Below the pieces are notes generated by a model. That model worked only from the letters and a program-made list of their open reading frames with translations. It was not told where the DNA came from and made no database searches. From contig JAWQFM010000006.1 in NCBI GenBank assembly GCA_033442325.1, positions 1,806,873 through 1,870,872 on the forward strand: a stretch of 64,000 nucleotides of DNA, read 5' to 3'. Positions 20,550 to 28,250 of the stretch are shown here, one piece after another. This stretch comes from Salpingoeca rosetta. Its lineage: Eukaryota; Protista; Choanoflagellata. The first letter of the stretch is position 1. Every line of letters begins with the position of its first letter. The translations under genes and the position numbers were made by a program.

Positions 20550-22366
<1,817 letters not shown>

Positions 22367-22930: not shown

Positions 22931-24218
22931 TCAGATAAACTCGTTTGAGGGCGCGACAGCGATGTTGGGGATGGAAGGTGCTCGCGTCTGGATGCGTGGC
23001 GTGGCAAACGGATGCTTCAGGCACGTGCGCGTCTCCGCGTACAGCGACAGCTGTCGACTGCCACTCTCAATGACCTTGTTTGTGACCAGGCTCGCATACA
23101 GCTGCTCCACGGTGAGCCGTGGCAGTAGCATGCCCTCGTGCATGTCGTCGAGATAGAAGCGGTAGTCCGAGTCGGCGTTGTCGCGCGTGCCTTCCGGGTG
23201 AATTTCCAGCATGAGCTCGCCCAGCGTCATGGACGACGGCACATACGGCAGCTTGATGTCAATGTCACTGCCGTGCACCACGACCTCAAACATGGTGTCG
23301 GGCTTGGGTGGGGGTGGGAGCTGACGCGCCTGTGGCGCTGGCGATGCCGGCACTGGCTGCTGCTGATGCTGCGGCTGTGGCATGACTGTACACAAGAATG
23401 ACAAGAATGACAAGAACAAAGGGTCACGGCGTATGCAGCATGAGATGACGAGTACGATAGGATTGGGGCAACACGACCAGGGCCCACGATGCAAACTTGC
23501 GTTGCACCTCGCACCCCCTTCACTTACAAGTACACTGAACAGCATTTCATACGCACACACGCACGCATACACACCAGTTCATGCATTGGCTTTGACTTAC
23601 AGCCGTACGACGCTGGGCTGCGCGGGTCAGACCCGGCGTGTCCAAAAGCAATGCGCGGCGTCTGCGCTTCGCTCTCATAGTCGCTGGCATCTGGTGGTGC
23701 AAGCTGCATGCTCGAGCCAGCGCGGCCAAGCACAAAGAACGTCTTCATCTCGCCCTTGCCCTTCACGGGCACCGTGCCGCGTTTCAGAATGTTCCAATCA
23801 TCCTTGTTGGGCAGCGCCTTGATGAACGCATAGCTCACCTTGATTTGTATAGTTACGTGTGTGTGTGTCATGTGCGTGCGCCAGTGTGTGTGTGTGTGTG
23901 TGTGCATATGCAGGAGTGAGTGCGTGTGCGTGTGTGTGTGTGTTTGTGTGTGGGAGTGGGGAACGACACACCAGCGAGCCATTATGTACGCATTGGTATG
24001 ATGCGCAACACATCTCACCTGCACGGCACCGCCAACGCCAGTCGACTCCATGCGTGATGCCACGTTCACCGTGTCGCCAAACAGGCAGTAGCGCGGGCGC
24101 TCGCGGCCAACTGAACACATGGATGTTTCGTGGGCACGTGAGGTTGAAACTCCCGAGCAAATCAGATGCATACATATACATACACACATACAACGTCTGC
24201 TCAACCACCATACACGCC

Positions 24219-24300
<82 letters not shown>

Positions 24301-27148
24301 CGAGCGCATCATCATGACCACCACTACCAACACCAACACCACCAACACCAAACATCATCATCATCACCACCAAACATCACCAACACTACCCTCATCCTGA
24401 TTGTCACCACCATCCAACGCACCGACTCCTGCCATGATGCGGCCGCTGTGCATGCCGACGCGAATGTTGATTGGCTCGCCGTCCATGGGACTGATGACCG
24501 TCTCAGCGGCTGCCACCATCTCCACAGCAAAGGCAGCAATCACGTCTGCGTGGCGTGGGTCTGCCTTGGGCAGGCCTGACGCAACCTACGGTGGGCATTG
24601 GTTGAAGGCACAAGCAGCGCGGATGCATGGATGCGGTGTGAGTTAGGGTCATGTACAAGACAGCAGCTACGACAGGTTTAGAGCCACGTCACGGCAAGTC
24701 CACGCATCGTGCATGCCCGCACCACACCCAGTGAACAACACACACACACACATATCACAAAAGCTGACGCCCGCGCACCCTACACAGTAGACAATCACAC
24801 AACCCGCACACACACACACACACATGCGCACACCATGTATGCGTCGCCGATGGTTTCGACTTTGTACACGCCGTGCTTGGTGCACAGGGCATCAAACTTG
24901 GAGAAGAGCTCGTTCAGCATGTCCATCACCTGGCAATGTAACGAATGTGCGAGCGCAACCGAGTTGGAGAGCGGTGGCGGAAGACAGTGTGAGCGAGATT
25001 CGGTGCAGCGGAGTGTACGGACATGGCGCAGCAAACTGTACCAGGGTCCCATGACACGCGAACAACTGAACGTCCACATGAACAAATGTCCACATGAACA
25101 AATGTCCACATGTGCATCTATCCACACACACACACACACATATATACAAACACACAAACACACGCACCCAAACATACAGTTACACGTCCATACCTCGCGC
25201 ACGGGGACGCTTGAGGAGATCTTGGTGAAGCTGACAATGTCCGAGAAGAGGATGCTGACGGCCTCGTAATGCTCGGGCTCGGGAATCTCGCCAGCCTTAA
25301 GCGCTTGTGCAACTTGCTGTGGAGGATCGGTGGAAGTGGTCGTGCCACGCACAGTGGTGAGTGTGGTGGGAGTCCACGCAGGAAATGAAGTGCACGCACT
25401 CGCGCGCACACATGCACACGCACACACACATGCACGCTCACGTATATGCACGCACGCTCACATACGCACACTCACACATGTATGCACGCACACGCACATA
25501 AAATTACACACACTCACATACACACGCACACACACATGCACGCTCACGCACACATTTGCACACTCACATACACACGCACACACTCATGCAATCGCCCCGC
25601 GACCCTCTCCAGCACACACACACACACACACACATACACGCATGTGACAGACCGTTGGGAGGATGCTGTGCAAGAGGCCGTCAACCCGCTCCTTCTCCTT
25701 GTCGAGATCCTCCATGGCCTTGTCGAGCGAAGCCGTCGTGTTTTGTAGCGTCTGCGCCATCAGCACCGTGGCAGACTGGTGCGCCGTGCTGATGACAAGC
25801 TCCCGCCCGTTGCTGTGGATGGGGATGTCTTCCAGACAGATGTCCAGCTTCTCCATCTCCTCCAGGCTGCTGATGGTTGGAATGCACAGGAACAGCATTG
25901 CGTCGTGCTCCGGGCTGAACACAAGCTCGCCCTTGAGAAACAGGCCGTCCTTGAGGATGGTGATGCCGGAAATCGGGTCCTTCCCGCCATCGTCAGGGAA
26001 CACCCCCGGAAGCGCCGTATCGTCGTTCACACCACTCCCCTGCGCGCTCTTGTTCTTGTTCGCCTCCGCTGTATCGCTGTTGCTGCTACTGCTGCTTGTG
26101 CTGCTGCTGCCGGCGGACGTGCTCTGCGAAACAGAGTTGCCCCTGCGCCGCCGCGTTTGATTCGGCTTTGGCGTCGTGGCGCTGCCGGTGGTGCGCGCAG
26201 CAGCAGCAGCAAAGGGGCACCCGGAGGGCGGGGCTGTGCTGGCGTCGCTGCCAGGTGGAACGGCACACGCTTGCACGAGAAGCGGGCTGTGGTCAAACGA
26301 CTCCAGCAGGCTGTCAAACCCAAGGCCGCGGATGTCTGGTCGCACCACGCGCATGAGGCGGAAGAAAGGCTGGCCAACACCACCGGCAGGCAGGCGCTCC
26401 TTCAGGCGGGGGCCGACGCTGGTGATGGTGAACGTGCGATCGAACGAGATATGCCAGGGGAACACCGAATCCACCATGGACGGCCCAAAAGTCAGCTGCC
26501 CGCTGATGGCGTGCGCCTTTTCCGAGTCAAAGTACTCCTTCTCTCCATAGCCCCTGTGGGTGACCGTGATATGTATGTGTGTGTGTGTGCATGTGGTTGA
26601 TACAGTTAGCGTGCGCAGCGGAAGTGTGTGATGTGTTACGTAATGTGTGTGACGCAATGTGTGTCGGTGTGTGTGTGTGTGTGTGTGCTCCAAGTTCGTG
26701 CATAGTAGGTGCAATATGACAGGCATCACGAGCAACAACGGAAACGTCATCTCGATTCGCAGACAACGACGATTGAATCAGCAAGCAGAGCGTGCAAGGG
26801 CATGGCCAGGCAAGGGCGCATGGGAGCATCTGTTTGCTGAACGTACTCTGGCCCCATGAAGATGTGGAACACGTCGTGGTCGTGGTCCTGGCCCTTCTTC
26901 TTCACGTGCTTGAGCTCAATGTCGAGGCTGTACACCTTCTTGGCAATGTCCTTGAGCAAGGCGATGGCATAGGGGTAGATGCCCATGCGCGACGAATAGT
27001 AGTGCAGCAAGAGTGAGCCATCCTTCTGCCTGTGCGGCTTGAAGGAAGGCCCCTTCATGGACGGGTACGCGTTCACGATGTTCAAGTGCATCGAGTCCAG
27101 ATGCAGCAGCAGCTCGTAGAAGTTGTCTCCAAGACTGTTTGTATGCGT

Positions 27149-27215
<67 letters not shown>

Positions 27216-28250
27216 TGCGTGTGTGTGTGTGTGTGTGTGTGTGTGCGTAGGTATGTGTGGTGTGACATGTTGGTGGTGAAATCTACCACCTGCATTAATG
27301 GATGCGTGTCATTACCCATGCTGAAAGAAGGCAGGACAAGGAAAGTGGCGCACCTTTGGACGAGGGGCAGGTAGCCCTTCTCCACGAGCACGCCGACCTG
27401 GAAGAAACCAATCTGAGACAGGCACTCCTCCGCGTCGATGCCAAGCACCTTTGTGTGGTTGTCAAGGTCCCAAGGTGCACAGAGGGAGGGTGAAGAAAGT
27501 GAGCAGCCATACCAGTCTGGTGGTAGGTCCGGTGGAGGGCATGTGGAACAGCCGCGAGGGAGAGTGCAAAGGCGAGTGCAATGTGCTGTGGTGGCAGCTG
27601 AGCGGCGCGGCTCAAGGGTTCAGCATGATTGTCTTGAGATTGCTCGAATACCTTTGCGGCTGAGACGACCATGTTGAGGGTGTGCTCGTCCGAGTATGCA
27701 TGGTGGAAGTTGACTGCGGTGTGCGTGACGTTGGCCTCCCTGCGAATGAGGTCAAGCTTCTCCTTGCCATCTGGGAGAGACAGCACGTAGGCGTTAAGTG
27801 CCTCTTCCACAAACCCGTACCTGACAAGCACCGAGCAATGGAAAGCCACCGTAAGCAATGGAGCCAGGGTCAATGAGAGAGAGAGAGTATGTGTGTGCGT
27901 GTGAGAGTGAGAGAGTGTGTGTGTGTGTGAGAGAGAGTGAGAGAGTGTGTGTGTGTGTGAGAGAGAGAGTGTGTGTGTGTGTGCGAGAGAGAGAGAGAAG
28001 GGGGTGGTGATTGTTCGTTGGTACCACGCTTTGCAGCGTGAGGGGAAGGCAGTGAGCATGGTGTGTGAGCATGGAATGGGTGTCGTGGTTGTGTAGAGGG
28101 TGATGATCTTTCGTGACGACCCATGACATCCACAAGCTCATGATACTCTGGTTTCGACCTTCAAAGCTTCAACGAGCCTCCAACCATCACCAAACGAGCA
28201 GACCAGAGGCATGCTTGGCGAGGGGGTGGGGGATGATGGTGGTCTTACAT
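22931..28250 (-). CDS. Soluble guanylyl cyclase: H-NOX, PAS/HNOBA, coiled coil, cyclase and a C-terminal ubiquitin-like extension
   Basis: N-terminus MYGFV, proximal His in LDSMH, YxSxR heme motif [28 protein letters not shown], and cyclase motifs [54 protein letters not shown]. The last exon 23385-22931 joins in frame (GGC T|gtaagt ... tacag|TC ATG). Confidence 0.93.
24219..24301. repeat. (CAA)n/(TTG)n microsatellite in a guanylyl cyclase intron
   Basis: Direct reading; lies between the ...IMAGV and VGRERPRY exons. Confidence 0.9.

Follow-up and report, generated by a model that had tools for sequence, protein, structure and literature searches.

From choanoflagellates to mammals, the design of soluble guanylyl cyclases (sGCs) is regarded as fixed at three modules. 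Among the class III cyclases, the fungal adenylyl cyclase Cyr1/Cdc35 carries a ubiquitin-superfold Ras-association (RA) domain that couples it to a partner. A survey of the choanoflagellate sGCs describes the canonical three-domain architecture (bioRxiv 10.1101/2022.02.14.480389). In mammals, sGC alpha2 is brought to synaptic membranes by its C-terminus, which binds PDZ3 of PSD-95 (PMC9914232). The window analyzed here, a 64,000-nucleotide stretch of Salpingoeca rosetta DNA, contains one sGC paralogue that appears to have gained a fourth, folded module. The reading that we consider probable is that of an sGC (H-NOX, HNOBA, and class III cyclase) with a spliced terminal exon that encodes a tether, an integral ubiquitin-like (Ubl) domain, and a tail, from which we infer a role in docking or self-association. 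What is new on this otherwise canonical sGC is a lineage-restricted, sequence-orphan domain of predicted Ubl fold on its own exon.

The gene lies on the minus strand. A Pfam scan found HNOB, HNOBA, and Guanylate_cyc on consecutive ORF pieces, in the order expected of an sGC and on one gene, with E-values of 2.9e-24 for HNOB, 3.4e-44 for HNOBA, and 2.9e-18, 1.5e-05, and 1.8e-16 for Guanylate_cyc. The six 3' exons (25316-25194 through 23385-22931) were traced by hand and have GT..AG borders throughout and consistent phases. From the N-terminal end of the protein to the stop codon, the features are the following.

27628..27819, minus strand: H-NOX domain part 1, HNOB profile positions 1-63 (Pfam, residues 81-144 of ORF 27298-28059, E 1.6e-08)
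26906..27220, minus strand: H-NOX domain part 2, HNOB profile positions 59-163 (Pfam, residues 77-181 of ORF 26750-27448, E 2.9e-24)
25653..26489, minus strand: HNOBA (PAS and coiled coil) region (Pfam, E 3.4e-44), with the donor ACG/gtctgt at 25653
25194..25316, minus strand: cyclase exon with the FSDIV metal-binding Asp (Pfam), bordered by cacag and gtatgg
24834..24929, minus strand: cyclase exon (Pfam), bordered by gccag and gtgtgc
24423..24585, minus strand: cyclase exon (VASGLP...) with a phase 1 end (Pfam), bordered by cgtag and gtgcgt; the phase is equal in L003
24019..24110, minus strand: cyclase exon (Pfam), bordered by ttcag and gtgaga
23601..23838, minus strand: last catalytic exon, with the end of the cyclase domain, the acidic stretch, and the start of the tether, ending SYG-T in phase 1 (71% identity to P0002 residues 37-114)
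23386..23600, minus strand: 215-nt intron, GTAAGT, then a pyrimidine tract, then TACAG (sequence reading)
23294..23385, minus strand: start of the terminal exon, a 30-residue Gln/Pro/Ala-rich linker ending P-K-P-D-T (translation and alignment)
23027..23293, minus strand: ubiquitin-like beta-grasp core, domain residues 1-89 (predicted structure and alignment)
22934..23026, minus strand: tail of ~31 residues, predicted to be disordered (pLDDT ~40; alignment), ending A-P-S-N-E-F-I
22931..22933, minus strand: stop codon TGA (sequence)

The catalytic residues of a class III guanylyl cyclase can all be read on this one chain. They are the two metal-binding Asp residues in FSDIV and IGDAYM, the Glu and Cys guanine selectors in KVETIGD and RYCLFGD, and the Asn/Arg pair. 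Because both halves of the catalytic set sit on the same chain, general knowledge of class III cyclases suggests that this enzyme could act as a homodimer, unlike the mammalian alpha/beta heterodimer. Inside the HNOBA (PAS) region, at ~25970-26260 of the minus strand, ~70-100 residues form a low-complexity insertion rich in Ser/Thr/Ala/Arg; the HNOBA match extends over 279 residues against 208 positions of the profile. The introns of the gene are rich in repeats. A (TTG)n microsatellite of ~35 units on the minus strand occupies 24200-24320 in the intron between the exons at 24423 and 24110, and (CA/TG)n tracts fill nearly all of the other introns and generate many long spurious ORFs. On the plus strand, a multi-exon gene at 21233-22366 converges on the cyclase gene and encodes short-chain-dehydrogenase-like peptides. 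Its end is ~565 nt from the cyclase stop, and the 3' UTRs of both genes must therefore share this interval. The terminal exon thus occupies the end at which the two genes converge, where a last exon is expected. The genome holds ~12 H-NOX loci (14 matches, on contigs C2, C5, C6, C7, C16, C27, C31, and C34). Profile and single-sequence searches of the genome found one copy of the Ubl exon, at the locus in the window, and no second copy; it is therefore carried by 1 of the ~12 H-NOX loci.

At the end of the last catalytic exon, the minus strand reads tcg tac ggc t (23610-23601) and continues with gtaagt (23600-23595). On the acceptor side, a pyrimidine-rich tract leads to tacag, of which the ag is 23387-23386, and tc atg cca follows from 23385. 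The split codon T+TC encodes Phe in phase 1, and the frame runs on into ORF 22931..23572. The terminal exon (23385-22931) has 151 codons, which specify the 30-residue Gln/Pro/Ala-rich linker and then 120 residues starting MFEVVVHG. When the intron is retained, the cyclase frame adds 25 codons and stops at 23526-23524 (ORF 23524..24351). The preliminary description had joined the donor gtaagt after SYG-T (23601) in frame to the acceptor tacag before TC-ATG (23385), and these coordinates agree base for base with the sequence. Its unspliced cyclase stop at 23524, reached after the 25 codons of read-through, is likewise correct, and all of the protein stretches that it quoted, including RQLSLYAE, match the translation from 23383.

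The domain has few relatives. When 1.84 billion cluster representatives were searched exhaustively by HMMER, the 120-residue domain had two true relatives, P0001 and P0002, a count that may be low because full-length sGC-Ubl proteins could hide behind cluster representatives without the Ubl. The HMMER matches P0003-P0005 were rejected as repeat proteins (SdrD B-like, low-complexity repeat). No further relatives were found when metagenome contigs were scanned with the three-sequence alignment. A word search, which is limited by candidate length, returned P0001 only when the alignment was used, and P0002 itself only when P0002 residues 140-269 were used.

P0002 is a protein of 269 aa from a JGI metatranscriptome contig (L002) of 1037 nt. 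The contig ends with AATAAA and a poly(A) run and is therefore a cDNA. It has a single ORF, which begins within the cyclase domain (Guanylate_cyc E 1.9e-20) and proceeds through a Gln/Pro/Ala linker and the domain to a stop. The last catalytic exon of the window is 71% identical to P0002 residues 37-114, and the terminal exon is 48% identical to residues 123-250. P0001, a protein of 121 aa, is encoded on the Logan contig L003. This contig is genomic, belongs to another species, and shares the exon layout of the window. The counterpart of the window intron (~1010-1270 of L003) has the donor TAC C/gtgagt and the acceptor ccag/AG, which join in frame, in phase 1, and at the same position. The unspliced frame of L003 ends after two codons. 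No conservation was found when the intron DNA of the window was aligned to that of its L003 counterpart, as expected for an intron. Within the cyclase domain, L003 253-660 has intron positions and phases as in the window (phase 1 after MAGV-G and phase 0 after GAVQ). Those intron sequences differ from the window's and are free of CA-repeat filling.

The exons were searched singly, and the support for the junction is comparative, coming from these two other species. The junction is beyond chance because the intron position, phase 1, and the in-frame join recur in L003 and because the L002 cDNA is continuous across it. In the window, P0002, and L003 alike (3/3), an aromatic residue and then a Gln run stand at the junction, and P-x-P-D-x precedes the Met of the domain. 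Read-through of the intron gives unrelated tails (25 codons in the window versus 2 codons in L003), while the spliced continuation is conserved. In one 17-codon block of the terminal exon, counted by eye, the window and L003 differ by 9 synonymous (third-position) changes and 0 replacement changes; judged by this count, the frame of the terminal exon is under purifying selection. The preliminary description had assigned the exon to the cyclase gene. We consider this assignment very likely right, since the orthologous poly(A) cDNA holds a single ORF, the phase-1 intron is conserved, and P-x-P-D-x stands upstream of the Met.

The three-sequence alignment of the domain has 39 invariant columns, and the domains of the three carriers are 44-52% identical. 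In the 31-residue catalytic-core exon, each relative differs from the window at one residue. On these identities, the three carriers are distinct lineages.

After the cyclase domain, the chain continues for ~190 residues in all, composed of a flexible tether of ~65-75 residues, the Ubl of ~90 residues, and a disordered tail of ~30 residues. The Gln/Pro/Ala linker keeps its composition and length in P0002 and L003 but not its sequence. Directly after the cyclase domain is an acidic stretch of ~20 residues, MQLAPPD..YESE.QTP (23653-23709, minus strand). This stretch is kept in the window, P0002, and L003, while the rest of the tether is not, and is a candidate short linear motif or phosphorylation site. 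The extreme C-terminus (22934-22954, minus strand) is also conserved. It reads APSNEFI, APSNDLI, and APATGEV in the three sequences, with a final Ile or Val, and may be a PDZ-type or other C-terminal ligand.

The structure of the isolated domain was predicted with AlphaFold2 from the shallow, three-sequence alignment. The window model has a pLDDT of 70.3; its core lies at ~80-87, and its first 30 residues and the surroundings of helix 2 lie at 84-87. Strand 1 spans residues 2-7; strand 2, 11-18; helix 1, 24-31; helix 2, 62-71; and strand 5, 81-86. Strands 3 and 4 appear as short bridges around RFYL, and residues 90-120 are disordered. This order is the beta-beta-alpha-beta-beta-(helix)-beta topology of the ubiquitin fold. 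The model of the orthologue P0001 has a pLDDT of 54 and an unchanged order of elements. The conserved hydrophobic periodicity of the alignment fits the predicted strands and helices.

The preliminary description had proposed a beta-grasp fold and had named AlphaFold with Foldseek or HHpred as the way to check it. Foldseek matched the window model to Ubl proteins only in the PDB, with weak E-values of 3e-3 or worse; the matches were the BIRC6 UBL, GABARAP, ubiquitin, Elongin B, FAT10, the Ring1B RAWUL, ISG15, and SUMO. An exhaustive VIA-align comparison to 48,161 chains gave Ubl folds in 50 of the 50 matches listed, over residues 1-89. The best was the BIRC6 UBL (Z 9.6, rmsd 1.6, 74 aligned), followed by the Npl4 UBD (8.3) and RAWUL (8.1 and 7.8), and FAT10, Atg12, SUMO, UBX, and others followed near Z 7, where a score below 8 can reflect a common arrangement. 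All 50 matches listed for the P0001 model were Ubl folds as well, with the BIRC6 UBL again the best (Z 6.4), RAWUL at 5.5, and UBX at ~5. Thus, for both models, solved Ubl structures rank above other folds among the matches listed. A language-model search returned look-alikes from Ubl-type families (GRHL1_C, Ubiquitin_GT-1, TDP-43_N, CIDE-N, PB1, and Par3 N-term), with all scores under the 0.9 trust line. The predicted fold is likely a ubiquitin-like beta-grasp, in line with the earlier proposal.

At the level of sequence, the domain is an orphan. No Pfam family was detected for the window domain at E up to 1, or for either relative at E up to 0.1, and the profile of the domain had no sequence match in the PDB at E up to 10. 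By sequence profile, then, neither Pfam nor the PDB links the domain to a curated Ubl family or a solved Ubl. Conjugatable modifiers (ubiquitin, SUMO, NEDD8, Atg8/12, FAT10) have a C-terminal Gly or Gly-Gly after strand 5. Here, Gly-Gly is absent; strand 5 (QLSLYA) is followed by ~31 residues, and the protein ends ...NEFI. Since there is no Gly-Gly and the domain sits inside the polypeptide, the sequence indicates that it is an integral, built-in Ubl rather than a conjugatable modifier.

Two alternatives deny the fusion or the fold. The exon could be a separate small gene or product, a free-standing Ubl translated from one of two Met codons (at 23383, or at 23293, where the Met is conserved), with the cyclase ending at 23524. 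The domain does start with an invariant Met in three of three species, and P0001 was called as a stand-alone protein of 121 aa by the gene caller. However, ubiquitin also has a structural Met1 in strand 1, and P0001 is just the longest of the ORFs that begin with ATG on its genomic contig, which bears cyclase exons too. In the L002 cDNA, cyclase and domain share a single uninterrupted ORF. The in-frame residues upstream of the Met (P-x-P-D-x and the Gln run at the junction) are conserved, which argues against this Met as a start codon. Moreover, the read-through tails that would end the cyclase are wholly different, and the new start would lie only ~140 nt beyond the cyclase stop. We therefore consider a separate gene very unlikely. 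It is somewhat easier to doubt the fold, since the exon might encode another small alpha/beta domain or a mostly disordered tail. The alignments hold three sequences, pLDDT ranged from 36 to 70 over five models of the window sequence, of which one reached 70, the orthologue reached 54, and no sequence profile of any Ubl family matched. Against an artefact, two models of different target sequences have equal element order and share their top match, each drew Ubl folds alone among the 50 matches listed, the independent language-model search also led to Ubl-type families, and the hydrophobic pattern agrees with the predicted elements. An artefact is unlikely on this evidence, and a Ubl encoded by the last exon of the cyclase gene is the reading that we carry forward.

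The other alternatives accept the Ubl and differ in what it would do. Cyclases are obligate dimers, and RAWUL and PB1-like domains oligomerize. The Ubl could then act in self-association, as do PB1, RAWUL, the TDP-43 N-terminal domain, and the GRHL C-terminal domain, and it would stabilize the cyclase dimer or build higher-order assemblies. RAWUL ranks 3rd and 4th for the window model (Z 8.1 and 7.8) and 2nd and 3rd for the orthologue, the language-model look-alikes are mostly oligomerizing Ubl modules, and a chain with both catalytic halves may well form a homodimer. A tether of ~70 residues is long for clamping a catalytic dimer, however, and the Z gaps between Ubl subtypes are < 1 from rank 2 on. 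Self-association is a minority possibility for these reasons. Binding of p97/Cdc48 by a UBX-like domain, or of a small GTPase by an RA/RBD-like domain, is slightly less likely than a fold artefact. All three sequences have an invariant L-L-P-R in the loop after strand 3, followed by T-x-x-Q/E-L, and this loop is reminiscent of the F-P-R loop by which UBX inserts into p97. The structural matches include several UBX domains as well as the Npl4 UBD. The loop is ~5 residues longer than that of UBX and has Leu in place of Phe, and UBX (PF00789) with its R...F-P-R loop was not found, which leaves a resemblance only. Coupling to a small GTPase through an RA/RBD-like domain had been raised in the preliminary description, and it found no specific support. 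The PI3K-C2alpha RBD and talin/FERM F0-F1 matched at Z 6.8-6.9, tied with dozens of other Ubls, and the PI3K-C2alpha RBD (Z 6.9, rmsd 3.8) was the sole RA/RBD row among the matches listed. The Pfam models of UBX and of RA/RBD (PF00788 and PF02196) match none of the three sequences. In this genome, matches to UBX (n=2) and RA (n=1) are all single intron-split fragments.

Docking of the cyclase to a partner or site is the simplest role for the Ubl, since integral Ubls are protein-contact modules and the tether is long and flexible. The Ubl, perhaps together with the C-terminal motif, would be a module for protein-protein docking or self-association. It would bring this one sGC paralogue, 1 of ~12 H-NOX loci, to a specific partner or location, and gas-triggered cGMP would then be made locally. 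Docking or localization is a plausible role for the Ubl, to which we give slightly less than even weight. A more specific version is tentative, and we think it more doubtful than docking alone. In it, one sGC paralogue of a few choanoflagellates acquired a lineage-restricted orphan Ubl through capture of a terminal exon; with the C-terminal motif, this Ubl would form a targeting cassette that holds the gas-sensing cyclase at a defined cellular site or partner and confines cGMP. The location of the Ubl on its own exon is consistent with exon capture. A sharper version takes the invariant LPR loop as the mark of a UBX-like p97 adaptor or of a new class of effector-binding Ubl; it is a lead only.

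The added fold normally serves docking, scaffolding, or contacts with the proteasome or p97. If the Ubl sets where or with whom the cyclase works, the locus would be a natural example of pre-animal compartmentalization of gas/cGMP signaling, and a small separable domain would be a handle for finding the partners of the cyclase. If the targeting reading is true, a single-celled relative of animals would confine its cGMP signaling spatially in a way that animal sGCs do not show. As an orphan Ubl family with three members among billions of proteins, it is also a data point on the origin of Ubls and their movement by exon capture. Its practical importance is modest, given so small a family and a function that is putative.

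The preliminary description had regarded the H-NOX-PAS-CC-GC-Ubl architecture as undescribed. In the literature searched, no paper brought H-NOX guanylate cyclases together with a ubiquitin-like domain, and the order HNOB-HNOBA-cyclase-Ubl was not encountered. The best structural neighbors of both models are the BIRC6 (BRUCE/Apollon) UBL, the Polycomb RAWUL, the Npl4 UBD, and UBX, with Z-scores that reach 9.6, 8.3, 8.1, and 7.8 (BIRC6, Npl4, and RAWUL twice) for the window model and 6.4, 5.5, 5.5, and 5.2 for the orthologue model. Like the domain described here, these are built-in, non-conjugated Ubls, and they make protein contacts. They have no detectable sequence similarity to it and sit in unrelated hosts, and a common fold is not proof of a common function. 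Cyr1/Cdc35 resembles the S. rosetta protein in joining a class III cyclase to a ubiquitin superfold. It differs in being an adenylyl cyclase without H-NOX, and its RA domain is recognizable by sequence and is N-terminal to LRR and PP2C. Mammalian sGC alpha2 also has a C-terminal appendage after the cyclase, which targets the enzyme (PMC9914232), and the tail here ends in a conserved hydrophobic residue. The appendage of alpha2 is a short PDZ-ligand motif without a folded domain, whereas a folded domain is predicted here and the PDZ ligand is only a candidate. The order of H-NOX, HNOBA, and class III cyclase is common to the S. rosetta protein, the animal sGCs (alpha/beta and the O2-binding Gyc-88E and GCY-35), and Cf-sGC1 of Choanoeca flexa. 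None of those enzymes has been described with a folded domain after the cyclase, whereas the S. rosetta paralogue continues for ~190 residues of tether, predicted Ubl, and tail.
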